A stretch of DNA of 64,000 nucleotides from Oopsacas minuta (GCA_024704765.1 JAKMXF010000312.1:325309-389308), one strand, 5' to 3'; positions 1 through 40,400 are shown, counted from the stretch's first letter. Program-made: numbers and translations. Notes: generated by a model from the sequence alone, not told the origin.

Positions 1-3000
1 GTAGTAATACTAGTCAAGTCACCACCCCATACAGCACAACTAGATTGAGCATCTAACCAGTTGATTCCATCACTCACTTCATACAATCGATAGCAAGATC
101 CATTATAGATCAGATCACATACACTGGGTGTTGCTGGAATCAAACAAATTCATTAATTTCATTAAACAACTACATGTAATGATCACTTACCTGGTTGACT
201 GCAGAAGTAACAATTTCTCATGTCACCACAACCTCGATTAATCCAACCGTTTGATAATACTGCTGCTACATTCCTGTATCTGAATCTAACACAGTCCCAG
301 GCAGAATTTCCACCTCCAGGATTCATTCCAAGAAGCGAATCGAAGTTCCTATAAGTACTGGTACTACCATCTACCCAAACAAATGCACTAGCATTAGTAC
401 CAGCATCTATATCTATATCGTTTAGACCAATAAAACATGAAAAGTATGTATTTATATCTGTACTGCTATAAAACAATAAGCTATCTTCTACTGCTGACTT
501 TATTGTAGCTAGATTTCCTCTAGTACCCCAGTTATTACAATTCAGTTGAGCACTTAACCAGTCTAATTTAGTAGAATTCGAGACAAATCCGAAAGAAGTA
601 TCACCATATGTAAATTCTTCATCTGGGATTAAAACTAAAAATATTAAAGAATAATTACTTTTCAAACTAGTATATTATAAAGTTATTCATGTCATCACCG
701 AATATATTCTACAAAATGTTCAAGCACAAAAAAAGAGTTTTCTTACATTCCTATTACGTGCTAATTTATAAGCAGAAGTATATACCTGGTCGAGGAGGTG
801 CAGATGTAATGTTAATCTGCATAGCTATCACTTCTTTTTGATTCCAGTTGTTATCAGTATAGAATGTGTATGTTCCAGCGTTTTCTTCCATAAATTCAGC
901 AATTTCTATCGTTGAGTCAGTAGTGTTCATATCTCTTGGAATATTCCATTTTCCAATTAGGTTGATGGATATAGAAATATCTATTGTTTCTAATGGTATA
1001 GCAATCTTATTCGTGGATGGATATGTTGATGAGAAGCTTTCAGCCAAGAATAAACCATAGAAAATTGATATTTCAGGAACTATAAATATGAAAATGATAA
1101 ATATATCAGTTTGTAAAGTGGACAATAAATATTGATCGAATACCTGTCACCGAAAGATAGATCGTAGCGATGGTAGTTCCTTCTCTCATACAGCTAAATG
1201 CTCTAGACTCTGTTGGTAATTTAGCACTCTCAATAGATATGTTGAATGGGTTATTATACATACTATCCCACATAATTGCACTCAAACTACCAATCTCAGT
1301 AGGATCACACAATAGTAATATATCTTCACTGTCTACTCCTACTAGGTATATGTATGTTACTCCTTCAACCGCAACTAGATAGAAAAGTTAGTGGAAAATA
1401 TTCAGAAATATCAATTAACTGTCTACTCACCTGTTGTTAAAGATGGATCATACAACCCAATTAGATAAGATGATGTACTGGTTTGACACTGATAATATCC
1501 TTGTTTATTAATATTAACTGCTAACCAACTTAATCCAGTTTCTGTACTACTATATGTTGCTGTCATACTTACACTGTTTGATAGATCTGAGTTTTCTGAA
1601 AAATTCCATACGATATTATTACTCCGTTCTCCTCCACATGCTAAGGTACGTGAAGTGAACAAGAAAGTGTTTGAGTTAAGCAGTTGGAAGTCAAATCTTT
1701 CGTTGGTAAGTTCTCCAAATCTATCAACTGAGAGTAGATAGGAATTAGAAATGTGAAAGGATCTTAGAATATAAATATTTAAAGTTACAAACCTATTGTT
1801 ACAGTACTAGTTGAAGCTCTTTTGCATACAAAAGTGTTTATAGTATCCTCACAGTTCACAGTTTCCCAACTAACACCTCCAGCTGTGTTAATCTCAATAC
1901 AATCACCATCATTAGATGGGGGATTTGTCCAGTTCGCATAGCTAAATGTTGTACCATCAGTCCAGGTATAAGTTCCCTCTTCACTCCTATCATTCAATCC
2001 TATCCAATAATTATTACTCATTATGATAGTGTATAAGTAGTTATTCTCTCTCTCTGTACTAATACTAGTCAGGTCACCACCCCATACAGCACAACTAGAT
2101 TGAGCATCTAACCAGTTGATTCCTGTACTTACATCAAATATTCGGTAACATGATCCTTCATAGATGAGATCACATACATTGGGTGTTGCTATAGGTAAAC
2201 AAAACACAATTATTGCTCCATTCTATATACAAACTTTATATACAAACTTTATATACACGATATAAGGTTACTCTCGGGTACCCAATGTATTCTTATACCG
2301 TGCATATTGTTATATAAAGGTCTTATTATAGTTGTATTTTGCATAAAATGTACAAATATGTTATTACCTGGTTTTATGCAGAAGTGACAATCTATTGGAG
2401 TATTACAAAAACCATTAATCCATCCATCTGATATAGGGCCAGCACCTCCTTCTTTATATCTGAATCGAACACAATCAAAATTAGCTACATCTCTAGGGTA
2501 TGTATATTCTAATGTTCCGAAGTTCCTATATGTGCTTGTGCTGCCATCTACCCACACAAATGCACTACCATTAGTACCAGCATCTACAAGTATATCATTC
2601 AGACCAATATAGCATCTAAAGTATGTTTGTATATCTGTTATACTATAATATAATAAATCGTCTTCCACTCCTGACTTGATTGTAGCAAGATTTCCTCCCC
2701 ATAAGATACAGCTGAGTTGTGCAGTTAGCCAGTCTATAGAAGGTGAATTGGTGAAATATCCAAATGTTGTTCCACCGAATGTAAATTCTTCTTCTGGATC
2801 CATAACTAAGATAGATTATGTATTTGTATAAAAAATCGATACATTCTGAGGTAAGTATATTCAGCGTGTATATATTCAAGAGCCTTTCATGTATGTAAAT
2901 TTTACGATATAATTCATAGAATATCTGTTTTAAGAATATTTTACCTGTAAGAGCAGGTGATGATGTAATGTTAATCTGCATAGCAATCACCTCTCCTTGA

Positions 3001-6000
3001 TCCCAGTTATTAGTATGGAATGTGTATATTCCTGCTTGCATGAATTCTGCGATAACTAAAGTGGAACTTGTAGTATCCACACCTTCTGGATCAGTCCATT
3101 TTCCCTCTAGGTTAATGGAGAGAGAAACATCTTTTGTTTCTAATGCGATATCAATCACATTCATTAATGGATATGTTAAGGAGAAGCTTTCAACCAGAAA
3201 CTGGCCGTAGTGAACGGACATTTCGGGGACTAAAGCAACAGTTTGTATGTATAAAGATAGCTTTTATTGAAATGATATGTAAATTTACCTGTAATTGAAA
3301 GATTGATAGTAACAATGGTGGTCCCTTCTCTCATACAGCTAAATGCTGTAGACTCTGTTGGTAATGTAGCACTCTCAGTATTTACGTGAATTGGGTTATT
3401 ATACGTACTATCCCATTTAATTGTACTCAAACTACCAATCTCAGTAGGATTACACAACAGTAATATATCTTCACTGTCAACCCCTACTATATACATGTAT
3501 GTTTGCCCTTCAACCGCAACTAGATAGATAAGTTGGTGTTATCAAGACTGTAAAAAATATGTTCAAAAATATTAGAGTGATCTACTTACCTGTTGTTAAG
3601 GATGGATCATACAATCCAATCGTATAAGTTGCTGAATTGACTTGACACTGATAATATCCTTGTTTGGTAATATCAACTGCTAACCAACTCCATCCAGCTT
3701 CTATATTCTCATAGGTTGGTATTTCTGGTTGACTAGATGATAGATCTGAATTCTCTGAAAATATCCATGTAATGGTTATATTCTCTTCTCCTCCATAAGC
3801 TAATGTATGTGGGGTGAACAAAAATGTGTTTTCACTAATTGTTACAAAGTCTAATCTTCCATTAGTAAGTTGTCCAAATCCTCCAGCTAAAACATATACA
3901 TATGCTATATCAAATTACTAGCGTTTATAGTATAATTAATATATACTGACCTGTTGTTACAGATGAAGCTCTTTTACATAGAAAAGCGTTTATCGTTGTT
4001 GTTTCACAGTCCACAGTCTCCCAACTACCTACCCCAGTTCTTATTATGTCAACACAATCGGCATTGCCAGCATTCGGTGTACCACCTTCCCAGTTTGTAA
4101 AAGTAGATGTTGAATCATCAATCCACGTGTACATTCCATCATTGTTATCTCTATCATTCAATCCTATCCAGCAATTACTCACTGTATCAGGGATAATAGT
4201 GTATAAGTAATTATTCTCTCTCTCTGTAGTAATACTAGTCAAGTCACCACCCCATACAGCACAACTAGATTGAGCATCTAACCAGTTGATTCCAGTACTC
4301 ACTTCGAAGACTCGATAGCAGAAACCATTATAGATCAGATCACAACCTTGTAAGTTAACTACAAATTTTAGACGATGAAATACCAGAAAATTCGGTTATA
4401 GTAACTAATGAGTAATAAGACTTTTTGATAAATATCAATTACCTTGTTTATTGCAGAAGTAACAATTTGTAGTATCAGTGCATGCTTGATTTTCCCAACC
4501 GATTGATAATTCACCAGTAGATTTGTATCTGTTTCTGACACAGTCCCAAGAGGCTGTTGCTACAGGATATGATTGTCCAAGTATACCGAAGTTCCTATAA
4601 GTACTGCTACTACCATCTACCCATACAAATGCATTAGCATCATTACCAGCATCATTTTCTATATCATTTAGACCTATCCAACATGAAAAGTGTGTATTAA
4701 TATCCGTACTACTATAGAACAGTAAGCTATCTTCTACTGCTGAGTTGATTGTAGCAAGATTTCCTCCCCAGTTCAGGCAATCAAGTTGACTAGTAAACCA
4801 TGTTGTATCAGTGGTAGTGAAGAACCCAATTGCTGAATTATCGTATGTTAGTTCAATATCTGGAGTTCCTAGAGGAATACATTTTATTAAATTCGATTAC
4901 TTTCGATATGATCGAAAGCTTTTCAACTGATTATATCGCATGTGAGTGGTATGGCAGATAACATACAATTCCTCAGGAAACAATGATAATATAACATACC
5001 TGTCACTGTAGTTGAAGATGTTAACTCAATTTGGATGATACATACTTCAACATCATCCCAGTTGTTAGTATAGAACTTGTATAATCCATCGTTTAGTGAT
5101 GAAAAATTTGGAATGGTTAAAGCAGATCCTGTAGAGTCCGTATCATCTGGAAGAATCCAACTACCATCAATATTGATTGACAGGATAACATCTTGTACTG
5201 CTGAAGGAACTGCTAGCATATTCATCTCTGGATAGAGTAATGAAAAGCTTTCAGCTGGTACAACACCGTAACTTATAGTTAACAAGGGAGCTATAAACAA
5301 TTGAATCCATAATTGAGATCAAAAGAATATTTCATTCAAAATACAAGATGTACCTATAACACTGATGGTATTTGTTGATAATAGATTTGCACCTCTCTTG
5401 CAAGTAAATTCTGTACTAGCCTCTGGTAAATCAGCTCTTGAGTTGTATATATTGATAGGATTTAAGAAGTCTCCGCCACTTGATAGAGTCCATCTCAACA
5501 TGCTTAAACTCCCACTTTCCATTGGATTACACAACAGTAATACATCCTCTCTGTCAATTCCAACTATATATTGGTATGATGAAGCTCCTGCTGCAACTAA
5601 ATAGAGGAATTTGCGGTCAATGAATTAGTAAGGAGATAATATCTGTGTTATTAAATCTCAATTGTTGTCTGTTCATTTGTTGTCAAGGAAAAGGATTTCT
5701 GGTATGCTATTATGAATTCGAATTTCGCGATCCCGATAACTATGAATTTATCGTGTAATCAAGAAAGTAAATAAAATGCTATAAAACTTGACTAAATATA
5801 TCAAATATGCGGAATCCGATTTTCACACTTTTGAATTAATCATATGTACATTTTTTGCCGCGCAGTGCGGGCAAGCGTAGCACGCTAGTATAGTAAATAT
5901 CAGAATAATCTACTTACCTGTTGTTAAGGATGGATCATACAATCCAATCGTATAAGTTGATGAATTGGCCTCGCACTGATAATAACCTTGTTTGGTAATA

Positions 6001-9000
6001 TCAACTGCTAACCAGCTCCATCCAGCTTCTATATTCTCATAGGTTGGTATTTCTGGTTGACTAGATGATAGATCTGAATTCTCTGAAAATATCCATGTAA
6101 TGGCTATATTCTCTTCTCCTCCATAAGCTAATGTATGTGGGGTGAACAAAAATGTGTTTTCACTAATTGTTACAAAGTCTAATCTTCCATTAGTAAGTTG
6201 TCCAAATCCTCCAACTAAAACATATACATATACTATATCAAATTACTAGCGTTTATAGTATAATTAATATATACTGACCTGTTGTTACAGATGAAGCTCT
6301 TTTACATAGAAAAGCGTTTATCGTTGTTGTTTCACAGTCCACAGTCTCCCAACTACCTACCCCAGTTCTTATTATGTCAACACAATCGGCATTGCCAGCA
6401 TTCGGTGTACCACCTTCCCAGTTTGTAAAAGTAGATGTTGAATCATCAATCCACGTGTACATTCCATCATTGTTATCTCTATCATTCAATCCTATCCAGC
6501 AATTACTCACTGTATCAGGGATAATAGTGTATAAGTAATTATTCTCTCTCTCTGTAGTAATACTAGTCAAGTCACCACCCCATACAGCACAACTAGATTG
6601 AGCATCTAACCAGTTGATTCCATCACTCACTTCATATAACCGATAGCAAAAGTCATCATAGATCAGATCACATCCTTGTGAGTTATCTATTCAAAAATTT
6701 GAAACTACATTTTGAGAATGAGTATTTCTAGTTTATTGAATTATATAAGAATGGAATTGAATTTATACCTCTATGTCACAGTGTTTCACCCTTATAGTAT
6801 GTATTATCTTGAAGTACTCAATTTCGGATATTTCTCATTAACAATTCGAGAACTACTGTTTTGATGCAAAATAAATATTGCAGAAATTAGCCTAATTGAA
6901 GTTACGTCACTAAAAATTGTAGATTGAACGTATAATATGTATTATACGTAATACGTCTTCGTTGAAAGACGTATTAAACATCTTAGCTTTATAATGTCTT
7001 GTGTCTTCCTTCCTTGAATGTATTATATTCAAGTGATACATATATTAAGGTCCTATATTGTCAACAATAATAACTTACCTTGTTTACTGCAGAAGTAACA
7101 AACTCTAGTAAAATGACACTGTCGATTAATCCAACCGGTTGATACTACACCTCCGACTTGGTATCTGAATCTAACACAGTCATGAATAGGATCATCATCT
7201 GAGGGGCTTACTATTCCAAAATCAGATCGGAAGTTCCTATAAGTACTGTTACTACCATCTACCCATACAAATGCACTAGCATTCGTACCAGCATCTACAT
7301 CTATATCATTTAGACCAATTGAACACGAAAAAGCATTATCTAAATCTGTTATGCTATAGAACAATAAGCTGTCTTCTTCTGCTGACTTGATTGTAGCAAG
7401 ATTTCCTCCCCAGTTGATGCAATTGAGTTGAGCAGTTATCCAGTTGATCCCAGAGGAAATTGTAAAATATCCAAAAGTGTTATCATCAAATATAAATTCT
7501 TCTTCTGGGTTCATTGCTAACAAACAAGATTATTATTATATTAATCATCAAATTTTGATTTCCATGAGTATACAATTAATTACATATATTAAGTAACTAT
7601 TACCTGTAATAGCTGGTGAAGATGAAAGAGTAATTTGTATAGCACACACATCAACTCCATCCCAGTTGTTAATATAGAATTCGTATAGTCCAGCATTTCC
7701 TGCCATGAAATTAGCAATTGTTGTAGTAGATCCAGTAGGCTCTGCTACCCCAAGAACAGTCCAGTATCCAATAATATTGGTAGAGAGAGTAATATCTTGT
7801 GTTGATAATGGAATAGCAAACGCATTGATAGCTGGACACACAGCCGTGAATTTACTAGCACTGATGCTACCAATTTGAATTGTTATTTCTGGAACTAAAT
7901 AAACACAATATTCATATAGATATAGTGAAACCTACAATGTAATATGTGCAAATGGAGACCAATACGATCTTTCCGCATCATTTCATTCTAATGGGCAGTC
8001 CATTATGTCATTTATGTGGCCGTTACTAATATGTTCCCCTCACAGCCTACGAAACTAAAGCCTATTCACGACATTTAACCATGGATTACTTCAAGTCTAT
8101 TAAATTTGACTTGCATTATAATTTATCGATAAAACAAAATCGGTGCATTTTGGCTCGAATAAATGTATCATTAATGGTTAATAATTTACAAATGCCATAT
8201 TATCCAACTATTATCAGTTTGAAATGACGTCATCTGTTTGGTTAGAAGGGCAAAATGTCCATCCATAGTACCTAATATAACTCAGTAACGTGACAACTTT
8301 ATCATTACAAAAATTCTATATTTTATATGTAAACATCCTTAGATCACTTGATATTAATTTTGGAATCGAAGACGCAATAGTGATCGTTTATCAGAGCTTT
8401 AAAAATGGTACATTTTTAACAACACTTTTCCCTTCTAACCAAACAGATGAAGTCATTTATAGCTGGTAATAGTTGGATAATATGGCATTTGAAAATTATT
8501 AACCTTCAATTATACATTTATTGAGCCAAAATGCACCGATTTTGTTTTATCGATAAAAATATAATTGCAAGTCAAATCTAATAAACTTGAAGTAATCCAT
8601 GGTCCATGAAATCCTAGACTGTGGATAGGCTGTAGTTGCGTAGGTTGTGTATTCTCCTGTATACTACATATCATATAATGAAACATAATTGATTAAATTG
8701 TTACCTTGCACGCTGATAAAGTTTGAAAATATAATACTTGAACCTCTCACACAATTTAAGTCAGTAGATTGTTCTGGTAAATTATTCCTCTCGTTGTATA
8801 TGTTGATAGGATTCAGGAAATCTTCACTACCTGTTAGAGACCACTTCAGTATACTTAAATCACCACTGTCCGCAGGATCACATAACAGCAATACATCCTC
8901 TCTGTCTATTCCTACTATATATACGTATTGAGTACCTTCTATTGCAACTAAATGTAAGAAATTGAGGTCAATAGATTAGTAAGTGGGATAATAATATGTA

Positions 9001-11595
9001 GAAATATTACACAGAGATATACTCACCTGTTGTTAATGAATTATCATATAAACCAATCGTATAAGTTAATGAATTGACTTGACACTGATAATATCCTTGT
9101 TTGGCAATATCAACTGCTAACCAGCTCCATCCAGCTTCCATATTCTCATAGGTTGGTGTTTCTGGTTGACTAGATGATAGATCTGAATTCTGTGAAAATA
9201 TCCATGTAATGACTATATTCTCTTCTCCTCCATAAGCTAATGTATGTGGGCTGAACAAAAATGTGTTTTCACTAATTGTTACAAAGTCTAATCCTCCATT
9301 AGTAAGTTGTCCAAATCCTCCAACTAAAGCACAAAATAATATATTTGCTGAATTTAATAGCTGCTATATATGGTATTATAGCATTGTCATGATACTGACC
9401 TGTTGTTACAGATGAAGATCTTTTGCATAGGAAAGCATTTGTCGTTGTTATGTCACAGTCCACAATCCCCCAACTACCCTCTCCAGTTCTTATTATGTCA
9501 ACACAATCTTCATCAATAACATTTGGTGCACTTCCTGTCCAGTTTGTATGACTATATACTGAACCATCAATCCAGGTATATGTTCCCTCTACACTCCTAT
9601 CATTCAATCCTATCCAGCAATTACTCACTGTATCAGGGATAATAGTGTATAAGTAATTATTCTCTCTCTCTGTAGTAATACTAGTCAAGTCACCGCCCCA
9701 TATAGCACAACTAGATTGAGCATCTAACCAGCTGATTCCAGTATTTACTTTAAATAATCGATAGCAAGATCCATTATAGATCAGATCACATCCTTGTGAG
9801 TTACCTATCAAGTTAAGTAAGAAAATTGAATAAAAGTATTTTCAACAGTTTAGTAATTTGAAAGGAACAAAATATATTTTATTTATATTTTCCCAGTTTA
9901 GTATTTTCCTTTCTTATTTGTATTATTTTAGTGTAACCATTGTCCAGGATTTTATACATTAATACAGGAATCTCGAGATTATTATTTTGAATAGTCAGAT
10001 CTTAAAATTATGTGATCAGAGATGAACTCCCTGAAGATGTCGAATTTTACCCATAGTATACTATTGCTACACATAACACATTATAACTCATTTTAGAACC
10101 TGCATGCAGCTATTATATAATCTTACTATCACAAAGCTATGTCTTTAACTTTTCTGAAGAATATACATAAATTCTTAAACTGGTTACCAGCGGCAGCTTT
10201 GTAATGTTAAATGAGGTCTCACGCTATTTCTATTACAAAATTGAACATCCATTCATATTTTATATAAATGTTTGTCAAATAATTATTAATATAATGTACA
10301 GGATCTTGTCCAGGACTTTGAAAATTATTTCCAGGAAAATTCCAGGAATTTTAATGTGTGATGCTGCAATATACTGGAATTAGACCTAAATATGCTGATC
10401 ACTGTAAAATTTATTTTTGAGGTTTATGTTTTACTACAATCACTTACCTGCTTTGTTGCAGAAGTAACAAGACCTAGTAGAGGCACAATCTCTATTAATC
10501 CAACCGGTTGATAATTCTCCTGCGTTATTGTTATATCTGGTTCTAACACAATCATGATTAGCGACTCCTGAGGGACTTGGTATACCAGGATTTGATTGGA
10601 AGTTTCTATAAGTACTGGTACTACCATCTACCCATACAAATGCAGTATCTACAGTACCAGCCTCTACAGTTATATCATTTAGACCTATATAACATGAACT
10701 ATAGAGTGTATTAGAGTTTGGTGCACTATAAAACAATAAGCTGTCTTCTACTGCTGACTTGATTGTAGTAAGATTTCCTCCCCAGTTATTGCATTCTACT
10801 TTGGCATTAGTCCAATTTATTGGGCTCACTATGAAGTATCCAAATGTTGTATCATCATATATTAGAGAAATATTAGGAGTTTGTGCTTAAGAAAGAGATA
10901 AAGAATATAATATATAATTTATACGTTAGTATATTGACTAGTTAATTCTATACAAAATTATCTAACAGAACCGTTTTACAAAGTCCTTGTACATATATAT
11001 TCTAATATTTACGTATAATTGTAGGTTATGTGTCGGACAAGTATTACAATTATTACAGCGTTAAATATATTCCATGTGGTCGTCCAAACTTTAATGGGAT
11101 TACTAGAACCTGCATTCCGATATTGTAAGGAACCTTTAGCCAAGCGTATCGTAGCAGGTAGCAAATATGGATACATTTATTTAAACTCCGCGAATTGTGG
11201 ATTATTATGGTGTCCAATGCTATTTTATCGGGCTGTAGCTTGGCCCGTATCAATAGTATTACCCTATGAATATTGGTTTGGTAGAAATCTGACCAACCTG
11301 ACCGCCTTTATAGCAATGAGTATAAACTAGGGTCAACTATGATATGTACCAAATTCTGTTTATTAACGACCCCAAGTGCAGTAGCTGGACAAAGGTCGTT
11401 ATGACAGACGCCCGCTACAAGCTATCGTATAAAAGTTATGATAATAAGGTTGACTGTTTATGAAAAGTAATATACATATTTGCTATTAGCTAAGTCAGAA
11501 AGTTTAAACATAATAAGATAGTTACCTGTTAAGATGCCGGAAAGTGAAGCACTTATCGTGAACAATAGAACAACTTGATAAAAGTTAGTTCCCAT
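1..11595 (-). CDS. Receptor gene 1: secreted/membrane protein with a repeated 5-exon module (CTLD-A, CTLD-B, Ig-like x3); 4 full modules plus a 5th running off the left edge (3' end not in window)
   Basis: Signal-peptide exon 11595-11526 (MGTNFYQVVLLFTISASLSGILT). Then GT-AG exons, all phase 1-1 with lengths divisible by 3: 10885-10448, 9804-9400, 9323-9027, 8947-8705, 7894-7604 | 7516-7079, 6686-6279, 6214-5918, 5596-5354, 5290-5000 | 4868-4443, 4358-3951, 3886-3590, 3519-3289, 3229-2945 | 2805-2368, 2188-1793, 1727-1431, 1374-1144, 1079-786 | 634-191, 133-<1. CTLD motifs W..AQ..C..WGG.L..I, WIGLND, W.DG, C...C. Ig-like C...W...GYYQC. Confidence 0.88.
3580..4295 (-). repeat. Near-identical intragenic duplicate tract, copy 1 (Ig1 exon + intron + most of CTLD-B exon)
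   Basis: Matches 5908-6623 at offset 2328 almost base for base, including the 64-nt intron; ORFs 3925-4302 and 6253-6630 differ only near their N-termini. Confidence 0.9.
5642..5888 (+). mobile_element. Non-autonomous Helitron-like insertion in an intron of receptor gene 1
   Basis: Begins TC after an A (5641) and ends CTAG before a T (5889), with a GC-rich imperfect hairpin (ttgccgcgcagtgcgggcaa, 5855-5874) ~10 nt upstream of the end and no TSD. Removing it leaves a 74-nt intron similar in size and sequence to the paralogous 79-nt intron 8948-9026. Confidence 0.68.
5908..6623 (-). repeat. Near-identical intragenic duplicate tract, copy 2
   Basis: See 3580-4295. Confidence 0.9.
8041..8649. 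mobile_element. ~610-bp foldback MITE with ~210-bp terminal inverted repeats
   Basis: Left arm (cacagcctacgaaactaaagcctattcac...accatggattacttcaagtc...gttagaaggg) is the reverse complement of the right arm (cccttctaaccaaacagatga...cttgaagtaatccatgg...gtggataggctgtagttgcgtaggttgtg). Lies in intron 7895-8704. Confidence 0.85.
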
Positions 11596-12654: not shown

Positions 12655-12680
12655 CTGCATACGTTTGTTTAACACTTATA

Positions 12681-12924: not shown

Positions 12925-13131
12925 TATGCTCAGTATTATTGCCCTGAGCCTTTTTAGATTGTTTGATGTTTTTTGCGTTTTTATTGTATAGATTGACTAT
13001 CATTTAGTATTTATGGTGAAATCAGACAACTCTACAATTATACAACACAACTTATCAAAAGAACAAATTATTAGACAATATGGCAGCAGGTAATGTTCAG
13101 GTTCTCATCATACACTTCTTTCTTCAACTCA

Positions 13132-16100
13132 CTATAGTATTGCAGTATCACAGTAGTACTCATTCATCAGTGCGAAGCAAGATAAGTAGTGATTCTAGAA
13201 AATATTAATATATAAAGTTCCACACTGAAAATGGCTCAAATGTAAGAAATTCGCGCGAATATACAAATTTTAGTTTGAAACATTAGGTTGTGGGAAAAAT
13301 AGTAACTCACCAACTCTGGGATAGAATTCATTCTTTCACTTCTCAATTTCTTGATAATTTGGAAAATATCAACCTCATTCCTCCCAATACTTTCCTGTAT
13401 AGCTTTAAAGAGGGTATACAGAATGCCTGTTTTGGCTATACCATCTGAGCAATGTATTATGATAGGAGAATTTGGGTGATCGCTTTTATGGGAGTTTATC
13501 GCCTTCAGTAGCTTTACAATAGCGCAGATATCTGTAGGTTCATCTGAAGAACTCCATTTGGTAGATATAATCTGTGTGAACGTGTGCATTGAGCTATCTA
13601 GTGTATGTGTGAGCGTGATTACCTTTTTATCAATAGCTTGCCAATTATCACATTTTGTCATTGTTAGAATGAACGGTGCACATTTTCCAGGGCCGGAACT
13701 CGTTGGCCAATATTGTATAAACTCGCTCTGTCCACTTTCAATCAACATTTTCTCTGTATATGTTGTTAGCGTTACAATTAAGCTCGCTTTGAATTGGTAC
13801 ACCATTTGGAGGAAGTCTTGTAGCGAAAATACAGTTGGATTTAGTGTGATTATCATATTTGAGGATTCAAGGTAGGTTGCATTGATGTAGTCCGTTTCAA
13901 AGTGCTCTGAATAAAGTAATACGCGGTTTTTATCATATGGCAGACTGAATTTTAGATGGTTTTTATTCTTGTGCTTCGGATCTTTCGCGATAGAGCACGT
14001 TTCTTGGAATGCTTTCTCACATTGATAATTCAATTCGCTGAATTGTTTTAGAAAGGCTGATATATAACCATCTATATCTGACTTTAAATAGAGTTTGTAT
14101 GTGTTCGTAAAGTCTTTTGCTTGGATGGAAGTTTGACCGAATAACATCTCCAATACGGCCAAATATATGAATTTGTATTGACGAAATGTTTGTACCATCT
14201 GTGGACGATGTTCCCTCATCTCGTATACGATTCGATATATACTTATTGCTCTGCCTTTTTGTATAGCCTTTGCTAAATTGAATAAAGTCATGAATGTCCC
14301 TGTGCGGCCTACACCTGCAGAACAATGCACTAGAATAGGTGATCTCGTTCTTGAGATACCTTCATGGACTTTCCTGACGAATGAAAGGAGTTCATCGAAT
14401 TGAGTTGGGACATCGTGATCTGGCCATGCTGTATAATGGAAATGTTTGACGTCAAAGCTATGAACACTGTCTGTAACAGTAAATATTCGGACGGTAAAGC
14501 CTATATCCACAGTTTCACTTTTAAGAGCGATGTTATATACCCCAATCTGCAATATATTGTACTCGTCAGTTGGAAAATATCTCTCACATTTCTGCTTACC
14601 ATTTTCAATCAGTTTTGTTAGCATTACAATATTAACGATGTTATTTTCAATAATCATTTTCCAGAAATCTTCGATCGTCGTATCCTTCGGTGCCTGTGCA
14701 GCAATGAAGCTATTTGGTACATATACACCTGGTATAAGACTCGCGTTAATATAATCTGATCTCGGGCCTTCACTTCCATATTGACTCAGTATAACACGAG
14801 ATTTATCATATGGATATACTTGTTTATATTTATTCTTGTGTTTATTGTATACGACTAATGCATTATCGCATGCATATCTAAGCGTTTTTCCTCCAAGCTG
14901 TTCATATTCACCTTCCAATTCTCCTTCATTTTCCCAAATTCTATCCAACTGTGATTTGTACTGTTCTAATGGTATTGGTCTCATAATAGGATCGACTATC
15001 TCCTCTATCTCTTGGTAGTTGCCTGAGTCACGTTTATTAGCAGGTTCCATTCTATCATATATAGGAGTTATGCGGTCATAATGTGGTTCAATTGTGGCAT
15101 AACTGCCTGAACCTTGTGACGTTTCTATATCTGTCTCTACACGGTTTATAATGATATTTCTGTCTATATTGGGCACTATTCCGTTAAGGTGATCATTGTG
15201 GTAAGTCTCTGTGATGTTCTCAAGTCTTATAGAATCAATACCCTGGTTTCCTTTCTTTATACTGCAACAGTAGACTATACAGGAAAACATGAGACAGCAT
15301 ATTATTAGAGCTACAATTACGATTGCAGCTATTATTGGTATTAAGAATGGTAAGATTTCTATGATAAGTTCTGAGGTGGTTGTGGGTGTAATGTTAGTGA
15401 GTTGAATATCTGTGAAATTTCGCGATCTAACTGCAGTGAATGCGTATTCTAATTCTACTATGAATGTGTACTGTACGTTTAGTGCTAAGCCTGTAATATT
15501 GTAGGATAGTTGGGATGTTTCGCCAATTAGTTGTTCACTGACGTCATTTACTGAGTATATACGGAAATATTCTTCAGATAGGGGTATTGGTGTCTCTACT
15601 AACTCCCATTCTAATAAGATAGCTGTGTTGTCTATCTGTGTACTTGTGAGCTTCGAAATCCGTTGGATGAAAAAATCTATATACAGTAAAATGTGAAAAT
15701 AAGTATGATGAATCAGAATACAGTTAAACCTACACAAACCGGCTTGTGGAAACGGAGTGAAAATATATAGAGCAATACAAATGAGCCTCACAAACGGTGT
15801 GTCATTTCTCGGTGTCCCTGACACCCTGTTTGTGGTACTGATAAAAAATCTAAGAAAACAAACTTACTCTGCACTACAAGATTAACCATCATCAGTAAGG
15901 TCCTTGTTTGATCCCATGTTTGTTCAGAATACAGACTATAAACTCCGTTATCTTCAATCCTTACCACACTGATCTCCACACTATTCTGTTGAATAGTTAC
16001 CCCATTCGGTAAGACCCATTCAACATTCTGGATATTAGAGGAGAGCACTAATTTTCTTGTTAAGACGTCGAGAGGCAATTGGTTTTGATTTGGAGGTAGA

Positions 16101-19812: not shown

Positions 19813-20374
19813 AATTCTAAAATAAACAAACCTATCACTTGTCTATATTTATACTTTGCTTGTGTTAGTAATCCTTTGAATTGCAAACCTCTTAAATAAG
19901 ATTATGCAACTAGACATTTGATCACTTGCTAAAATCAGCAAGTATTGGCGTAATTTTGACTTTTCCTGTAATTTTCAACATCAGTGCACATAGTGAAACA
20001 TCTAATTAATTGCTTATTATATACACAATTAATCTTAAGGTTATTAATTACTTGATTAACCAAATTTGATTTGATTTGATTGTGTAACTATTCACCGATA
20101 ACTCTAATGTATTTTGATAGCGCTAAATAGCATGAAGGTTCAAAATTATCTCTTAAAATTCTATATTTTATTTGAATTTATTGACTAAACTCTTTGTATT
20201 TAATTGATTTGTAATTAAGGCAAATATTTAATTATTTTCCATTTGGTTAAGTATTCACCACAATTGTAGATTGATTCTTAAAATACTTGCAAAGTTATTT
20301 CAAAAGTCCATAAATGATTATGGAATTCAATTTCTATGCAGAGAAATTATATAGATTTTATCAATCCCAGCGCA

Positions 20375-27975: not shown

Positions 27976-28782
27976 TATATTATTAACTCAATAACAAATG
28001 TAATACAGTTTTTATACCTTGCCTAATTCCAATGTAATTTGAGTTCAAGTCATTGTATCTTCTGCATACCATACACCCTTGGTATATGTTGAATGATATC
28101 TGGTTTACAGAGGTATATCATATTGCAGTGTTATTTGCTATTGAGTATATTAGAGGGTGGATATGCGTAGTATTGTATGTGGATTAGGGTTGAACGGTGG
28201 TATTAGTGCTAAGGTTGGAATTCCAAGGGTATTTATTGGTTGCTAATTAGGAAATCAAGCTATTAAATAGGGTGGCTTGTATTATATGGGAAGTTTTCTG
28301 ATGTAATTTCTAGCTATTGCGACAATTTTAGATTTTTTCCGATTTTTTCCATAATCTTAACGAGACTTTGAACTTGAATTTCTACTCATTTTATCGCCAT
28401 TAGATTACACCAAAATATAGCCGAATTTTCTCCATAATTTGTAGAGGAAATTTCCCATTAATAATAACAGGCAATTGTGTAATACATTACTCATATACTG
28501 ATTTCAAATAAGCTGTGGGAGTTCTAACAGTCTCAACACAATTAATCTCAAATTAAATTCTCCGTTTTATGCATACAAATGTATTGGAGAGATTATTAAG
28601 TAATTTGACTGAGGTTTGCTGTGCTACCAGTTTATGGAAAAATTAACTTTAGAGATATATTCTTACATTTATCTATGTTGTAGGCAGTCAAAGAGTTAAA
28701 TTACTCAAATTACTATTTAATAATAGAATACTTGTGTATTGGAGAAGTTCTGTTTGGAAAGATATTATTTTATGATGAAGGA

Positions 28783-31700: not shown

Positions 31701-34700
31701 AGCATCACAATCTTAACACAGGACGTTACTATAACTAGTAACCTGATGGGAACATGGCAATCAGTTGTCAGTTCTCCTGCAAGTAACATAGCTATCCAAG
31801 TTGGAACATTTACTAAAGACAAGGCTGGTTTATACAGTGTATATGTTACACCTTGGGATGGAACATCTGATATACCCGCTATACAATTGGATATTTCCGC
31901 AATAGGTAGAGTTGATATGTTTGGAATTATTCTCAAATCTGTGCACTTTTCCATACAAATGCCTCCCTAATTAACGTAGTATACTGTGTGTTCATATTTT
32001 CTTCTCTTTAGGTAATAACTTCGCTGAAATGACGTCATCTGGAGTATACAACTTCCTTACTGGGTTTGAAGTGTTCTATGTTGATACTACATTAATTTGT
32101 GCTACAAGTGATTCAACTGAACCTCAATGGAGTTATATAGGAATTCCAAGTGGTAACAATACACCATCAGGCGTATGGAATTCTGATACAGGGCTAAGTA
32201 CATTGAATATACAAACAACAGCACAAGGATATTATAAATGTAATAAAGGAGCACTCTTCTCGGCATCTATATTTGATCCTAGTATTACAACTGGTAAGAT
32301 AGAAATAGAAATGTGTATTTCTATAATGAATATTTGAACATATTCATGTGTATTTAGTTGTGAAGCAAGGAGAAGTATACACATACTCATATACTAAGGG
32401 AGTAGATTCTTCAGATATACAACTGTTTTGTACAACTAGTATTAACAGAGCATTCCCTAACATGAAATGGGGTTCATTTGGGAATCCTGTAATTCTCAAT
32501 AATGTACCAAACCAAGAGTTTGATACATTTGATTGTACATTTGGACCCATTGGCATACTAAGTATCGATCTATTAGTACAAGGTGAGTACATTTATACGT
32601 AATTTCCTTCCAATACACTTTGAATGCATTATTCCAAAATTTATTTCAATAGGACCACCTGTAATAACACTATCCACTGCACCAGATACAACATATTCTA
32701 TGTTACCTACTGCATCAGATAACAATAGGGCAAATATACCAGTGTTATCTGAGAATGTTATGCTGCAAACTAATCTCTTAGGAAGATGGCTAAAACCTGA
32801 TGGATCTTCTACTGATGGAAACTTTATAGAATTCATACTATTCACTGTAGATCTTGTTGGTATTTATCAGTTTAATGTAACAAATTGGGAAAACCAGGAA
32901 GAAAAGGCAATACTGATCAATATTTCTGCAGTTGGTAAGATATATTTATATACAGTTGAACTCGGAAAACAAAATTAGCATATACTAACCGATGGATGTC
33001 TTATCCGAATATTATTCCTATACAATTCATACAATATTTGATAATCCGCTTTGGAGAAAAGTACGTACAAATCGAGTTCTAGTGTATTTCCTTATATTAT
33101 AGGTACCAACATTGGAATGGATTCAAATTCCACTATTACAACAATTTATATGGTATATTCTAGGTACTGCATTTATAACCATGACACAAAACGACTCTCA
33201 GATTATTTATCAAGAACTGAATAATAATTCAATAATAAATATGACAGGGAATGCATCCTTAGCTTGTGCTACGTCACATATACCAGCGGAGGAAAATGAT
33301 ATAGAATGGTTCTATCAAAAAACAAGCATAGCAGATCCGGGAGCAATAAGAGGGGATTATAATCTAACAATTGGGCTGAATGTATTGGTTACTGACCAAC
33401 CTGGATTTTACAGATGCGAAGTGTCAAACGAAAATCGTGAAAAGTTCATATATTTTGTAGGAATAGTGCCCACTTCTGATGATATTCAATCAAGTGAGTG
33501 ATTTACAAGCATTGATTGCATTTACAAATTGTGAAAATTAGGTCTGCACAGGATGTAATTTCAGTGTTTAAGCTACTATCATTGTATTTATCCTCATTTA
33601 GTTGGCAGAGATGATCTAGAGACTGCTAAAACAATTGATTATATCTTAGGAGAACCTCTAATGTTGTATTATTATGATGTAAATATACCTATAACCGCAA
33701 TTCGCTGGGGTGTTGAAGTTGGGTCAACTGAATTAGAAGAATTTCTGAATCCAGTAGATGTCAATGAGGTGTTTGCAAAGTTTGGAAGCGGTGCGTACAA
33801 GTTCCGTTGTTTCTATAGACAGAGTCCTATTACTAATGTTGGAAATATATCACTAAATATGAAAGGTAAAATTCAATGCATTTTCTATTACACGTGTCAT
33901 AACACACTAATTTTCAAATATTTCACTAGATAATGCTTCTTTGATGGTTGAGAGTGACGCAATATGACAATATTCAATGATAGTGGAAATAAAATTTTCC
34001 GATCCGGAAAGAATAGACATTGAGATTGTCTCTAAGAATGTGCTAATTTCCTGCAGTTTAAGTCCGTGTGGGACAAATTGAAAAAGATGGAAATCTTTTA
34101 ACTACTGAAGAGATAAATATAGTTTCATTGAGGATAGAGAATCAAGGATTATACTCATTGAGGAGAAATACTAGCGAAGGAGTTGAATATACTACTGCTG
34201 CCTTCAATCTAATTGTTACAGGTATTTGCCAATTGTTGCAAATTATCTATTGAATTAATGCGTTTGAAACTGCCTCAACAAAACATTATTGCGAATTTTA
34301 ATAATTCATTGCCTAAAATTTTGTGAATCTAACGTCGATATAACCATCCTATTTGCAAGTATACATAATATTGTGACACCTTATCATATTGTAGTCATCT
34401 ATGAATGTTCTATAAGTATAACTAATCTAATATATTATTTAGGCTATATAGAACAGAACATAATAAATCTGACCCCAAGGTATATAAATGATACTTCTAT
34501 CCAAATATCATGGCAATTACTAATATCCTTACCTGACAACGCAGAGGAAACATTCACCGTTACATATCAAACACTAAATGGCGTAATACAAACAGCTGGA
34601 ATAACAACAGAACTAAACTATAACTTAACTGATCTCATCCCCGGTCAAACCTATACAATTTGGGTTGAATTGTCGTATACATACACTTTTATGTCGCCAA

Positions 34701-37071
34701 AACTTTCAATTGAAGTTACCATCCCCGCACTGGATTTCCCACTGATATATGTCGTAATTGTTGTCATTTTAATCGTGATAATTGTATTACTGGCTATTAC
34801 AGCTGTATTAATCATCCTCTTAATTTGGAAACTTCGGAAGAGGAAAGTGAAAAAGTTTGAAGTACTTGAGACAGAGGAAATTCCACCTGAACCGAGTACT
34901 AAGCCAAGCAAAGACTTTGGCTACTCCCCAGTGCCAATTGATAATCTTGCGTACAATCCAGAATTGACCGAGTCAATGGGTGTAAAGTCAAAGTTTAAGG
35001 AATCAGCAAGGAATAGTGGGAATTATCAAAATTTGAAGGAAGTTATGGACCCTAGGATGGAGCCTATAGCTTTACATTTGTTTAAAAAGGCAATTGATAT
35101 GCTTTGGAAAGATGAAACTACACTTGAAAATGAATACAAGAGTTTAGGTGGTGAAACACTACTTTACGAATGTGGGTATGCTCAATTAGATCAAAACCGA
35201 ATCAAGAATAAATATAAATTCATTTATCCATATGATAAATCACGTGTTGTGCTGAAGAAACTTGGGAAAGCAATGCACACAGATTATATCAATGCAAGCA
35301 ATATACCAGGAGTATATGTTAAAGAGAATTTTATAGCGGCACAAGGCCCGAAGGAAAATACTATTAAGGACTTTTGGAGAATGGTCTTTGAGCTGAAAAT
35401 TGTGAATATTGTTATGGTTACTAATTGTGTTGAAGGTGGTAAGCAGAAGTGCGAAGAATATTTCCCAACAAAAGAAGGACAAATTAGTGAATTTCCTCCT
35501 TTCAAAGTTCGTATTACAAATGCGGTACAGTCCAGAGGTCATATCACAAGGATAATTAGTATTGAAAGGGGAAATGAAAAGTTTCAAGTCAAACACTTCC
35601 ATTTCACAGCCTGGCCAGACCATGATGTACCATCTCTACATCACGAATTGCTACAGTTCATTGGCTATGTACATGAGAATATTACTCAAAGCGACGCGCC
35701 AATACTTGTACACTGTTCAGCTGGTGTGGGTCGTACAGGGACGTTTATTACTCTATTCAATCTGAGGGCTAATATATTGAAACAACAGCCTATTAGTGTT
35801 TACCATTTAGTGCACGAAATGAGGGAACATCGTCCTCACATGGTGCAAACCTTTCGGCAATATAAATTCATTTATCTTGCTGTACTTGAATTGTTACAGG
35901 AAAAGACTGCGGTATCTGCCGAGGAATTTCTGAGTACTTATCAGAATTATATGGAATCTGCGCGGATAGAAGAATCCGAATTTGCAAAACAGTTTTCGGA
36001 GCTTAATTATCAATGCGATAAGTCTTTTGTATATTCCTCAGATAAGGGCGAAGAGAACGCCGATAAAAACCCCGTGAAAGATATCCTACCGTACGACATT
36101 AACCGCGTTATGATCTATTCTCCATTTTTCACCTGCAACTATATAAATGCTACCAATCATAACGATTTTTTCATAACCACTCAACATCCCTGTGAAAATA
36201 CTCTACGGGACTTCATGCAAATGATATATGAGACTAATGCTGGGCTTGTGGTCATGCTTACAACATCAAAAGAGAAGAGTAAGATATTAGGGAATTTATC
36301 AGAACGTAAGGCTTATTGGCCACATAAGGATGATACCTTGGAAGTACCACCCTTCCAAGTTCAAGTAGTGAATGCTGAGAAGACAACAGCAATGATAAAA
36401 CAGAAAATATCACTGAAGAATGTAAAGGAGAACTCAGAACATGAATTCCTACAAGTAATTTCTGCAACTTGGAATGAGAAAGGTGAACCTATCGATTATC
36501 AATGCATTATTAATGTAGTTCGCTTTATCACAGTTCAAAGACAAAAATATCCACATTCGCCGATTATAATACACTGTGTGGATAGCATTGGGAAAACTGG
36601 TGTTGTGTTAACTGTATATGAATGTATTAAAGAGATGCAAGAGACTGGAGAAATTGATATTTTCCATACAGTTAAGCGACTGAGAAGAGAGAGAATGAAA
36701 TGTATACCACATTTGGTAAGTTGACTTTCTCATAGAATCGAATTTATTACTGTGCCGTGGATGGCTTTATATGTTACCATATACTTACAGTGGATTCCGG
36801 TTATAAGAACACCAGATATAAGAACATACCGGTTATTGGAAGTAAGAACACACATTGCTACTCCCAAGGAGGTTCTTATAACCTGTATTCACTCTCCCGT
36901 TAACACCTTTAGAGATTAAAACACCGAATTCGGCGTATATACTCGTAGTAACCTCTCTAGTTGTGCAACTGACAACATAAATTTTTACATGTACATTTTC
37001 ACACCTTCTCTATCTTTTAGTCTCAATTCCAAGCATGTTTTACGCTAATGAAGCAATACCTCGATTATTAA
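28783..37071 (+). CDS. Receptor gene 4: receptor-type protein tyrosine phosphatase, SP-Ig-like x12 (+1 disrupted)-FN3-TM-PTP D1-PTP D2
   Basis: Exons 28783-28849 (SP MRTEYLFILIVFVLQILSVIGQ), 29135-29395, 29783-30058, 30150-30371, 30606-30887, 30956-31225, 31318-31539, 31630-31905, 32012-32293, 32358-32582, 32653-32934, 33164-33493, 33602-33865, [33930-34221 disrupted], 34443-36715 (FN3, TM, D1 KNKY/WPDHD/HCSAGVGRTG, D2 HCVDSIGKTG), 37021-37071 (stop). Confidence 0.88.
33930..34221 (+). pseudogene. Frameshifted Ig-like exon (pseudo-exon or sequencing error) in receptor gene 4
   Basis: 292 nt (not 3n) with an in-frame TGA at 33965. Homology to gene 3 exon 23951-23646 is split across three reading frames (DNASLMVESD / NMTIFNDSGNKIF / IDIEIVSKNVLISCSLSPC / GQIEKDG...NQGLYSL...FNLIVTG). 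Confidence 0.65.
36788..36894. mobile_element. pogo/Tigger-like MITE in the last intron of receptor gene 4
   Basis: TA|cagtggattccggttataagaac ... gttcttataacctgtattcact; decayed relatives near 28880-28995 and 37545-37660. Confidence 0.7.
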
Positions 37072-37356: not shown

Positions 37357-39454
37357 ATGTGTGTTAGAAATTCGATATTTATTTCATTTTTACTGTTCTT
37401 GTTGATTGTTATTGGACAAGGTAAGTTGTATTCCTTAAAATGTAATCCAGTTTTACAGCCAGTATTTGTAGCCATACGAATTCAATTGAATATTTATCTC
37501 TCTCTTCGAACATTGGCTATTGACATTACGCGTTTAAGATACAGTGTATGCCGGTTTTAAGCACACACTTGGGATTAGCGATACATGTACTTATAACCGG
37601 CATAAATATAAGGGAATATATGAGAACTGTTTTCCAGAGGATTGTTCTTATAACCGACATACAATGCATCTATTATAGGTAGTTATATTCAAGAGATCGA
37701 GATTATAAGCATTATAGCCCTCAATGAAAATACAGTATTAATATCATGGGATCTTAAAGTCCCACTCTTACAGAATTCAACTGAAGTTTTCCACATACAC
37801 TACGGAAGGTATAATACAAATACTTATGCTGGACACACGAATAATCAAAGCTACATACTCCGTGACCTCACAGCTGGGATATCCTACAGAATATACATAG
37901 CTATGACGTATGTATTCTCTAATATAACATACAAAACTGACACATACCAATTCAAGATTGAGAAAATTCCTGCTACAGAGATGAATATACCCAGTATTGC
38001 TGCTATTTCTATTGTCGTATCCTTGACTATATTATCTATTGGGGTTTTAGTGATAGTATTGGCGATATGTGGGCTGAAACGTGTTGGAATTACAGGGAAA
38101 TTTGTTCGAGAACGGCTGCAATTGAATGGCAAAACAAACAGTAATATATGTATGATTACATCATCTGAATGTAATAGTGGGAATATTACATTGAATGATA
38201 CAGCTGAAACTCGTAAGAATGCGATTTCTATCGAAGAAACTGTGATAGAACAAGGAATTGATATTGATTCGATATATTTCGCGAATATCAGTCAGAACGA
38301 TTGTAATGTTAGCGAAATAACTAACGTAATTGAAACGGAAAGTATATCTGATATTCCAGACGTTTTAAATACTGAAAATGCAGACCAAAGAGTTGAATAT
38401 ACTCCCGAACAGCTCAGTGAAAATCTTTCTGATAAAACATACACAATTCCACCAACATTAAGCAAAGATTTGAATGAGACATATGAAATTACATACAAAG
38501 ATGTTGAAAATATTGATCAACAAAATACAGAAATTGTTTTCAATATTGAGCTCGAGTTTGAAGCATTAAACGCTGAAACAAGTGAGCAAAACTGTGAATT
38601 TGATGTGAATAATATTACGCTTGAATCGCCAAATTTTGAAGGTTACACACTAAATGCAAGTTACCTTTATAATGCAAATATTATTGCGACAATACACCCA
38701 ACGCGTAGGAGGGATTTCCTACAACTTGTGTACCAAAGTAAATGTAGTTTAATTGTAATGCTTACGAGTAGGCTAGAGCAGCAAAGTATTATAGCTAGAA
38801 CATCAGAGTATGTACGATATTGGCCAGTTGATGAATACACAAATGAACAGGAAGATACGCTAATTGAGCAGGAGATATCTTTACAGCATAGTGTCGAAAA
38901 CAATAGTATATCATTCAAACATATAATATTTACTGGGTGGGATGATAACGGTGATATTGAAGACATATCGAATGTTATTAAGCTGCTGCGGATAATACAA
39001 ACACATAAAGAAATGAACATGAATACTCGAGTAATAATACATTGTAATGATGGCGTAACGAAGACTGGGATATTAATGACTTGCTATACTGCATTACAGG
39101 ATATGGAGGATAGGAATTGCTATAATATTGAAGATATTGTGAGAGATCTAAGACAGCAGAGAACAAACATGTTGCCAACCCTTGTAAGTTATTTAATTGT
39201 GCGATATATTCTCATTTTTGCATACAGTGAAACCTCAATACGAACACAGTTAATTGGAATTTCCGTATAAGACGTTTAAATGTTCACCAATGGTTATTGA
39301 GATTACACCGGTTAATACGAACTCAGGATAAAGCGTACACATTTTGACCGCCTCTTGGTGTTCGTATTCACTGCATTTACTAAATTTATATTTCTAGACA
39401 TCTTACAGAGCTTGTTATCGTATCATGGAAGAATTCTCATCACTACAGCAATGA
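37357..39454 (+). CDS. Receptor gene 5: truncated RPTP paralogue, SP-FN3-TM-acidic linker-D2-only pseudophosphatase
   Basis: Exons 37357-37420 (SP MCVRNSIFISFLLFLLIVIGQ), 37694-39183 (FN3 ISWDL...YILRDLTAGISYRIYI, TM IAAISIVVSLTILSIGVLVIVLAICGL, E/T/N/D-rich stretch, D2-like NASYL...DFLQLVY...YWP...HCNDGVTKTG...LRQQRTNMLPTL), 39398-39454 (TSYRACYRIMEEFSSLQQ*). No HCSAGVGR or WPD. Confidence 0.85.
39225..39373. mobile_element. pogo/Tigger-like MITE in the last intron of receptor gene 5
   Basis: TA|cagtgaaacctcaatacgaacac ... gtgttcgtattcactg. Confidence 0.65.
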
Positions 39455-40297: not shown

Positions 40298-40400
40298 TTT
40301 TGTACACTTTCAATAGATATAATTCTATGCATTAAATGGCGTTAGTAAGTAAGTTATGACGTAATATATATTATTATATTTCTTAAATATTAGCTATATT

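Follow-up and report, generated by a model that had tools for sequence, protein, structure and literature searches.

A Cluster of Lectin-like and Immunoglobulin-like Receptor Phosphatase Genes in Oopsacas minuta and Its Conservation among Glass-Sponge Assemblies

Introduction

The first 39,454 nucleotides of a 64,000-nucleotide stretch of the Oopsacas minuta genome (GCA_024704765.1, JAKMXF010000312.1:325309-389308; hereafter, the window) carry five adjacent genes for modular cell-surface receptors, referred to below as g1 to g5. Their products draw on C-type lectin-like domains (CTLDs), immunoglobulin (Ig) and Ig-like domains, fibronectin type III (FN3) domains, and protein tyrosine phosphatase (PTP) domains. 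The locus raises the question of whether it is a rapidly diversifying recognition locus of the immune or allorecognition kind, as a preliminary description of the window had proposed, or an old and stable set of protein tyrosine phosphatases of the receptor type (RPTPs). The second answer is favored here with a probability of roughly 0.7: the five genes would form an evolutionarily stable cluster of type-I receptor genes belonging to a single RPTP subfamily, whose expansion in sponges is so far documented for Hexactinellida. The genes appear to be old and to have been kept between glass-sponge lineages, with change seen at the exon level (repeat conversion and the loss of one exon) and in a relaxed amino-acid variation of the ectodomains.

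Results

Gene Models and Their Support

The window is AT-rich (about 34% G+C), and the introns are short. Positions 1-39454 contain five intact, adjacent type-I receptor genes, in which all introns are GT-AG and no internal stops were found (Table 1). Splice sites were picked by alignment of exon families. In all models, the ectodomain exons are of phase 1-1, have lengths that are multiples of three, and encode one domain each. The predicted type-I topology is borne by exactly one candidate signal-peptide (SP) exon per gene, with a phase-1 donor at its end, and by a hydrophobic transmembrane (TM) segment predicted from the sequence after the FN3 domain of g2-g5. The large exon of these four genes ends with a phase-0 donor after 'P-x-L' and is joined to a short last exon lying behind a TAG acceptor in phase 0. 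This last exon is homologous in g2-g5, finishes the second phosphatase domain (D2), and resembles the C-terminus of annotated Oopsacas RPTPs. The 3' end of g1 lies beyond the left edge of the window, and neither a TM segment nor a phosphatase domain of this gene is found within it. The intergenic region between the head-to-head genes g3 and g4 is presumed to be a shared or bidirectional promoter.

Four public runs holding the locus were compared over a 6000-letter stretch of g2. All of them proved to be genomic contigs, collinear with the genomic sequence of g2 and without intron-skipping joints, and so represent DNA and not RNA. All 12 listed indels (second haplotype and sister taxon) sit in predicted introns of g2, where non-exonic sequence makes up just 24% of the stretch; the g2 model is supported because the listed indels avoid the exons.

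The claim of five adjacent genes sharing one exon toolkit (SP, CTLD, Ig-like, FN3-TM-PTP, and a homologous last exon) was thereby confirmed, including the end of the cluster at position 39454, and the phosphatases are indeed built into the modular receptors. The count of five receptor phosphatase genes stands for four of them (g2-g5), in which a PTP domain is present; none is visible for g1 in the window.

Orthologs, Synteny, and Phylogeny

Loci of two other glass-sponge assemblies were taken for comparison, namely L001 and L002 on ERZ25069837:ctg27300 and L003 on ERZ25071281:ctg49227. Orthologs of g2-g5 were found in at least one of them, those of g2 and g3 in both and that of g5 in a single one, and gene order and orientation are the same on both contigs, with g4 head-to-head with g3 and followed by g2. 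In g2, all eight ectodomain exons match in both assemblies with 46-74% identity, and the phosphatase exon matches with 68-70%. All ten ectodomain exons of g3 are collinear in L003 (49-64%); L001 begins inside this gene, and the last seven or eight ectodomain exons follow in order there (47-66%). The phosphatase exon of g4 matches its ortholog (P0012 in L002) at 63%. The g5 ortholog in L002 is located directly downstream of the g4 ortholog, is 53% identical over 519 aa, and carries the identical motif HCNDGVTKTG. By this comparison, the origin of the cluster, of the architectures in it, and of the dead member (g5, described below) is placed before the split of these lineages. Rapid gene turnover without stable one-to-one orthologs was not found. 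The preliminary description had itself counted one-to-one orthologs of the same architecture in distant animals against a recognition locus, and the orthologs recovered here come a fair distance toward this, within the range of the glass sponges.

The synteny extends to the right flank of the cluster, where positions 40088-45437 correspond to 14951-20794 of L002 with 62-87% identity. A Rav1/DMXL-like open reading frame (ORF) was observed further right in the window, at 50671-54642.

Among named proteins, RPTPs of Oopsacas minuta come closest, one of them being P0054, which also has a Lectin_C domain; dozens of ORFs from the ENA are closer than the named proteins, with up to 70% identity. A tree of 81 sponge RPTPs was built using FastTree with vertebrate PTPRA/E as the outgroup; the named members are from Oopsacas, and the ENA members were inferred to be from glass sponges. 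The 81 sponge sequences formed one clade against PTPRA/E, which supports the proposed lineage-specific nature of the receptors, and g2, g3, and g4 each grouped with three or four ENA sequences in a small clade of its own that has good support. Among solved structures, the first phosphatase domain (D1) of g2 was matched best by PTPRA, PTPRS, LAR, and PTPRE. An assignment of this domain to a vertebrate subtype was dropped, as similar scores were obtained against R4, R2A, and R3 structures.

Phosphatase Domains and Catalytic State

The four largest ORFs in 1-39454 carry PTP domains. Two Pfam Y_phosphatase stretches were detected in each of g2, g3, and g4 (E 1e-115 to 1e-119) and one in g5 (E 6e-28). 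The FN3-TM-PTP exon is common to g2-g5, and in g2-g4 this single exon encodes FN3, TM, D1, and most of D2. The D1 domains of g2, g3, and g4 are motif-complete (KNKY, TAWPDHDVP, VHCSAGVGRTG, and MVQTFRQYKF) and are predicted to be catalytically competent. Their D2 domains carry HC-x-D-x-I-x-K-(T/S)-G, with the catalytic Arg replaced by Lys and the WPD loop gone (HCSDGIAKTG is the P-loop of g2), and are predicted to be inactive. In g5, D1 is absent, and the sole phosphatase domain is D2-like with HCNDGVTKTG and no WPD. By these motifs, g5 is a D2-only pseudophosphatase, catalytically dead yet conserved, and accounts for the dead member noted in the preliminary description.

A motif SGNYQ(E/N)(I/L)xE(I/V)xDP was observed just before D1 in g2 (about 14990-15030, minus strand), in g4, and in the ortholog P0001; it is missing in g3, and SGN alone is left in g5. 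The tyrosine of this juxtamembrane motif may be regulatory. A scan of g2-g5 for immunoreceptor tyrosine-based inhibitory and activation motifs (ITIM/ITAM) returned matches solely within folded PTP sequence or not kept in the orthologs, and these were dropped as evidence.

Exon Families and Domain Identities

Exon families were obtained by self-comparison of all stop-to-stop ORFs. Besides the phosphatase exon, four repeated families were found, comprising A (13 copies), B (13), D (11), and C (12); E is a variant of A, and F is a variant of D. The ectodomain exons are arranged as (C C B D A)x4 followed by C C in g1, (C B D A)x2 in g2, A B D A B D A B F E (ten beta-domains) in g3, and (A B D)x3 A B F plus a damaged E (13 including the dead exon) in g4, while the ectodomain of g5 consists of FN3 alone, without A, B, C, or D exons. 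The five genes thus differ sharply in their ectodomains, with the architectures that had been listed earlier.

The C exons were identified as CTLDs by Pfam Lectin_C (E 6e-18, 8e-7, and 2e-7; cutoff 22.6 bits), and a WIGLND core with the Cys pattern is present in the 12 CTLD exons. The canonical sugar-binding motifs EPN/QPD and WND are absent from them, with TPN/APN/EPT and WET/WGI/WIN found instead; 'lectin' is used here for a predicted fold and does not imply sugar binding. The profile of the B exon matched solved Ig domains (titin I-set, 3.4e-13; CEACAM1, DSCAM, and NCAM2), and its core W...G-Y-x-C is invariant; on these matches, the assignment of B as a genuine Ig domain is solid. No Pfam match was found for the A exon. 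Its AlphaFold2 model (predicted local distance difference test, pLDDT, 89) is an eight-strand sandwich without a disulfide pair, and its best Foldseek match (E 2e-3) is to Ig-like, FN3-like, or PKD modules, so that A is called Ig-like by its modeled fold alone. The D exon is short, has a Cys-Trp-Cys pattern, and was modeled with a pLDDT of 81; its best match had an E of 0.08, with weak similarity to the N-terminal Ig-like domains of cytokine receptors, and its Ig-like designation is tentative. The B-D-A triplet is accordingly described as one true Ig domain and two divergent Ig-like beta-sandwiches.

Orthologs Resembling g1

The CTLD/Ig-array gene most similar to g1 adjoins the g2 ortholog in both related assemblies (L001 13258-22448; L003 20737-22316). 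It is convergent with the g2 ortholog there, and the two genes are in tandem in the window, which indicates an inversion in one lineage. The last large exon of the g1-like genes encodes an A/E-like domain, a TM segment, the motif YIEL-x7-Y(M/I)(T/I)I, and then a D2-like pseudophosphatase alone, with HCEDGISKTG. The tyrosine motif has ITAM spacing, is preceded by GYEN, and is conserved (L001, minus strand at about 14430-14480, and the corresponding stretch of L003). Judging from these relatives, g1 probably also ends in a linker with a tyrosine motif and a D2-only domain. If so, the cluster would number three active members against two dead ones, and its lectin/Ig receptors would include one with an ITAM-like tail next to another whose phosphatase is active.

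ORFs of FAM200/ZBED5-type transposases (18218-19826) were observed between exons of the g1-like gene in L001.

Divergence among Paralogs

The pairwise identity of g2, g3, and g4 was 57-59% for D1, about 40% for D2, 31-36% for FN3, and 25-31% (medians) for the Ig-like exons. The observation that D1 is conserved while the ectodomains diverge was therefore reproduced; such a contrast in constraint is usual between catalytic and extracellular parts and does not by itself point to diversifying selection. Synonymous divergence (dS) between the cluster paralogs is saturated, and the paralogs are ancient on this account. The ratio of nonsynonymous to synonymous divergence (dN/dS, Nei-Gojobori) of the repeat exons had medians of 0.45-0.7, with most between-gene pairs saturated. 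Positive selection was rejected for want of a convincing ratio above 1, the sole such pair being B1/B2 of g4 at about 1.1, on values of 0.12/0.11.

Polymorphism of g2

Variation was assessed for one gene, g2, from two haplotypes in the contig data of one sample. One run equals the reference exactly, and a second haplotype, present in two runs from one and the same sample, differs by 0.2% across D1-D2 and by about 1% over the exons and introns of the ectodomain. The sister taxon differs from g2 by 3.4-3.5% in the phosphatase exon and by 3.4-5.8% in the ectodomain region. The alleles of g2 thus do not diverge strongly in the ectodomain (about 1%), and their variation is far from hypervariability of the allorecognition type. 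Between the haplotypes, nonsynonymous and synonymous differences were counted as 0:6 in the cytoplasmic part and 12:5 in the ectodomain including FN3 (Fisher p = 0.005; 38 listed of 53 differences). The g2 ectodomain tolerates or accumulates amino-acid variation.

Eleven haplotype differences are gathered within about 110 nt at 18610-18715, six of them intronic and five in the Ig exon B1 of g2 (four nonsynonymous). This segment could be a micro-conversion patch or part of a divergent allele.

In addition, the word depth of contigs rises from about 183 to about 1470 at 15743-15773 and 18115-18145, in two introns of g2, where many contigs join or break and have unrelated continuations. Both segments look like a short high-copy interspersed repeat resembling a miniature inverted-repeat transposable element.

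Exon-Level Turnover

The E-type (A-like) exon of g4 is broken. Profile hidden Markov models (HMMs) recover both of its halves, and its ortholog is intact in a related species (L002:9420-9725). The exons flanking it, of which F lies at 33602-33865, are of phase 1-1, so skipping it leaves the reading frame of g4 open. In g1, a tract consisting of a C2 exon, an intron, and a B exon occurs in repeats 2 and 3; its two copies are 96.6% identical across 795 bp, against about 74% in the sequence on either side. At the protein level, B and C2 of these two repeats are 96% identical, and the adjacent D and A exons are 45-46% identical. Such a pattern is the expected signature of conversion or re-duplication.

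A search with profile HMMs built for families A, B, C, and D matched nothing outside the gene models except the broken E exon of g4, and tblastn of all exon peptides also found nothing there, though it missed the known broken exon too. A weak last-exon-like ORF (EHYLLPYCLI...) was observed at 13003-13104 on the minus strand, just downstream of the last exon of g2; its E of 0.06 was obtained in a tiny database and is not significant.

The preliminary description had read conversion tracts, a broken exon, and an orphan exon, together with the dead gene, as signs of ongoing birth-and-death evolution. The broken exon and one conversion tract were recovered as described; the orphan exon was not, the weak ORF being its sole candidate. 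Turnover therefore stands at the level of exons (one tract and one dead exon) and falls at the level of genes: g2-g4 lie in ortholog clades of their own, synteny and the exon architecture of g2 and g3 are kept, and dS is saturated.

Table 1. Coordinates of the receptor genes, their selected parts, and the neighboring genes (positions in the window).
Feature	Position	Strand	Description
g1	11595->1	-	Giant CTLD/Ig-like repeat receptor; 22 exons, GT-AG; partial, open for at least 2429 aa
g1 signal-peptide exon	11526-11595	-	Followed by (C1 C2 B D A)x4 + C1 C2
g1 homogenized tract, copy 1	5895-6689	-	C2 exon, intron, and B exon of repeat 2
g1 homogenized tract, copy 2	3567-4361	-	C2 exon, intron, and B exon of repeat 3
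g2	19812->13132	-	Receptor phosphatase, SP-(CTLD-B-D-A)x2-FN3-TM-D1-D2; 1660 aa
g2 large exon	13311-15676	-	FN3, TM, juxtamembrane region, predicted active D1, predicted inactive D2
g2 short last exon	13132-13194	-	NHYLSCFALMNEYYCDTAIL, stop; matches C-termini of Oopsacas P0054, P0070, and P0078
g3	27975->20652	-	Receptor phosphatase, SP-A B D A B D A B F E-FN3-TM-D1-D2; 1754 aa
g3 large exon	21109-23411	-	
g3 last exon	20652-20717	-	
g3/g4 intergenic region	27976-28782		Head-to-head; 807 bp between start codons, placed by SP exons
g4	28783->37071	+	Receptor phosphatase, SP-(A B D)x3-A B F-(dead E)-FN3-TM-D1-D2; 1860 aa with the dead exon left out
g4 broken E-type (A-like) exon	~33968-34221	+	Three-frame translation: one in-frame stop and one frameshift
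g4 large exon	34443-36715	+	
g4 last exon	37021-37071	+	
g5	37357->39454	+	SP-FN3-TM-acidic Tyr-containing linker-D2-like pseudophosphatase; 541 aa
g5 exons	37357-37420, 37679-39183, 39398-39454	+	The last is the homologous short exon
Right flank, Pet100-like gene			82% aa identity
Right flank, protein kinase gene			Multi-exon; 69-87%
Right flank, NZF/RanBP2 zinc-finger protein gene			Start of the gene; 62-66%

Discussion

Interpretation of the Cluster

The conserved orthology and the low divergence argue against rapid birth-and-death and against hypervariable allorecognition, and the conservation of the cluster between species makes it probable that its genes have fixed ligands. The ectodomains would bind extracellular ligands of the cell surface, the matrix, or microbes, which may be proteins or glycans. 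As expected from the established biology of RPTPs, clustering or dimerization driven by a ligand could alter the access of D1 to phosphotyrosine substrates. The D2 domains and the D2-only receptors may act as non-catalytic partners, regulators, or scaffolds through D2-D1 interaction or phosphotyrosine binding.

Several points weigh against this interpretation. The CTLD exons lack the canonical sugar-binding motifs. The cytoplasmic end of g1 lies outside the window. Gene expression, the way the exons are spliced, and the omission of the broken exon are all read from genomic sequence. The label 'sponge-specific' means here that no one-to-one vertebrate ortholog was seen in a FastTree analysis with PTPRA/E as the sole outgroup, and the contrast in nonsynonymous and synonymous differences of g2 is provisional, with 38 of 53 variants listed.

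An immune or paired-receptor role is a minority possibility, and its two forms fare differently. A rapidly diversifying immune or allorecognition locus, with genes born and lost as in KIR/LILR or Hydractinia Alr and with ectodomain variation setting self/non-self specificity, is very unlikely. In its favor are the tandem arrangement of genes whose ectodomains differ greatly and among which active and dead members occur, the conversion tract, the dead exon, the nonsynonymous polymorphism concentrated in the g2 ectodomain (including the 110-nt patch with 11 differences in and beside B1), and the one recent exon pair at a dN/dS of about 1.1. However, one-to-one orthologs with the same gene order and exon-by-exon architecture are present in two other glass-sponge assemblies, the dS of the paralogs is saturated, the haplotypes diverge by just 0.2-1%, and the divergence from the sister taxon is similar in the phosphatase and ectodomain parts. 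Moreover, the dN/dS medians of the repeat exons (0.45-0.7) do not exceed 1, and g5 is an old conserved gene and not a recent casualty. The other form is a paired-receptor module, in which g1-type receptors (ITAM-like motif and dead phosphatase) would be phosphorylated, g2-type receptors (active D1) would dephosphorylate, and g5 would be a further non-catalytic modulator, together making an activating/inhibitory pair whose inhibitory arm has its own phosphatase. It is unlikely, if less so than a diversifying locus: the g1-like genes beside the g2 ortholog (L001 and L003) combine the conserved YIEL-x7-Y(M/I)(T/I)I with a D2-only HCEDGISKTG, g1 and g2 are neighbors, and CTLD-B-D-A modules are common to both, but the tail of g1 itself is outside the window, short tyrosine motifs easily arise by chance, and no canonical ITIM/ITAM of g5 is conserved in its ortholog. 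Known paired receptors are, in addition, nearly identical in their ectodomains, whereas the ectodomain exons of g1 and g2 are about 25-35% identical. A broader version, in which glass sponges possess germline-encoded paired recognition with the g1 type (and g5) opposed by g2-g4 with their built-in active phosphatase, for discrimination of microbes or of self and non-self in a syncytial animal, is likewise unlikely; if true, it would be an early-animal counterpart of the activating/inhibitory immune receptor pairs of vertebrates.

It is hardly credible that the ORFs are pseudogene remnants or artefacts of repeat assembly. One exon is broken, g1 contains a high-identity internal repeat, and the runs at the locus are genomic only, as decaying or mis-assembled repeats would allow; against this stand five ORFs that run open through 3-22 exons with canonical splice sites and reach lengths from 541 to over 2400 aa, contigs of four runs that are collinear with g2 and whose listed indels avoid exons, and intact orthologs in other species. 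An evolutionarily stable cluster of one expanded RPTP subfamily is the reading retained.

Comparison with Known Receptor Systems

By their sequence features, g2-g4 are members of the classical receptor PTP family. With the classical tandem-domain RPTPs (R2A LAR/PTPsigma/PTPdelta, R2B PTPmu/kappa, and R4 PTPalpha/epsilon) they share a type-I organization with Ig-like and FN3 modules and one TM segment, as well as an active membrane-proximal D1 (WPD, HCSAGxGRTG, and Q-loop) and a poorly active or inactive D2. Unlike classical RPTPs, the cluster genes use CTLDs and the B-D-A triplet, whose two divergent Ig-like domains escape Pfam; g2-g4 have Lys for the catalytic Arg in D2, encode FN3, TM, D1, and most of D2 in a single exon, and form a clade of their own. 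The annotated Oopsacas minuta RPTPs P0054, P0070, and P0078 belong to the same catalytic subfamily and have the same C-terminal peptide encoded by the last exon. Among them, P0054 ('receptor-type tyrosine-protein phosphatase epsilon isoform X3', 996 aa, Lectin_C and two PTP domains) shows the order CTLD, B-type Ig, TM, D1, and D2, but it has one CTLD and one Ig domain and falls into another clade of the tree than g2-g4.

Tandem type-I receptors with variable Ig-type ectodomains, different signaling ends, and gene conversion are shared with KIR/LILR, Hydractinia Alr, and Botryllus fuhc/fester. In contrast to these systems, orthology, synteny, and architecture are kept here, allelic divergence is about 1%, and a phosphatase is built in instead of being recruited through ITIMs. 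Pseudophosphatase receptors are represented by IA-2/PTPRN, and the D2 domains of RPTPs bind D1 of other RPTPs. Comparably, g5 and the g1-like orthologs keep the PTP fold without the catalytic Arg and WPD, yet are conserved; they differ in that their domains derive from D2 and not from D1 and in that they are clustered with active relatives, the g1-like genes adding an ITAM-like motif. CTLD-bearing RPTPs, termed 'PTPRLec', were reportedly found in a phosphatase survey of the sea urchin S. purpuratus, a term for which our literature search returned nothing; if so, CTLDs and RPTPs would be combined outside sponges as well. To our knowledge, the CTLD2-Ig3 repeat organization is not known from them.

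Phosphatases and lectins are not mentioned in the two hexactinellid genome papers searched, and literature searches on hexactinellid tyrosine phosphatases, on sponge RPTPs with C-type lectins, and on sponge allorecognition with phosphatases found nothing relevant. A look-up of P0054 in the Atlas gave no large cluster combining Lectin_C and Y_phosphatase, a blank there being no proof of absence. In the literature searched, the receptor family appears to be undescribed beyond automatic annotation.

Significance

RPTPs are a core signaling family of animals in which the ectodomain sets what a receptor senses. In a lineage of sponges, inferred to be the glass sponges, one RPTP subfamily has expanded into dozens of genes, with ectodomains of kinds not seen among vertebrate subtypes (arrays of CTLDs and the triplet in which one Ig domain is joined by two divergent Ig-like domains) and with conserved D2-only pseudophosphatase receptors. 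The locus offers an exon-resolved example of how receptors are built by exon shuffling, and the tempting label of an 'immune locus' is corrected by the conservation between species. It also raises the question of whether an early-branching animal may pair ITAM-like receptors with phosphatase-bearing relatives.

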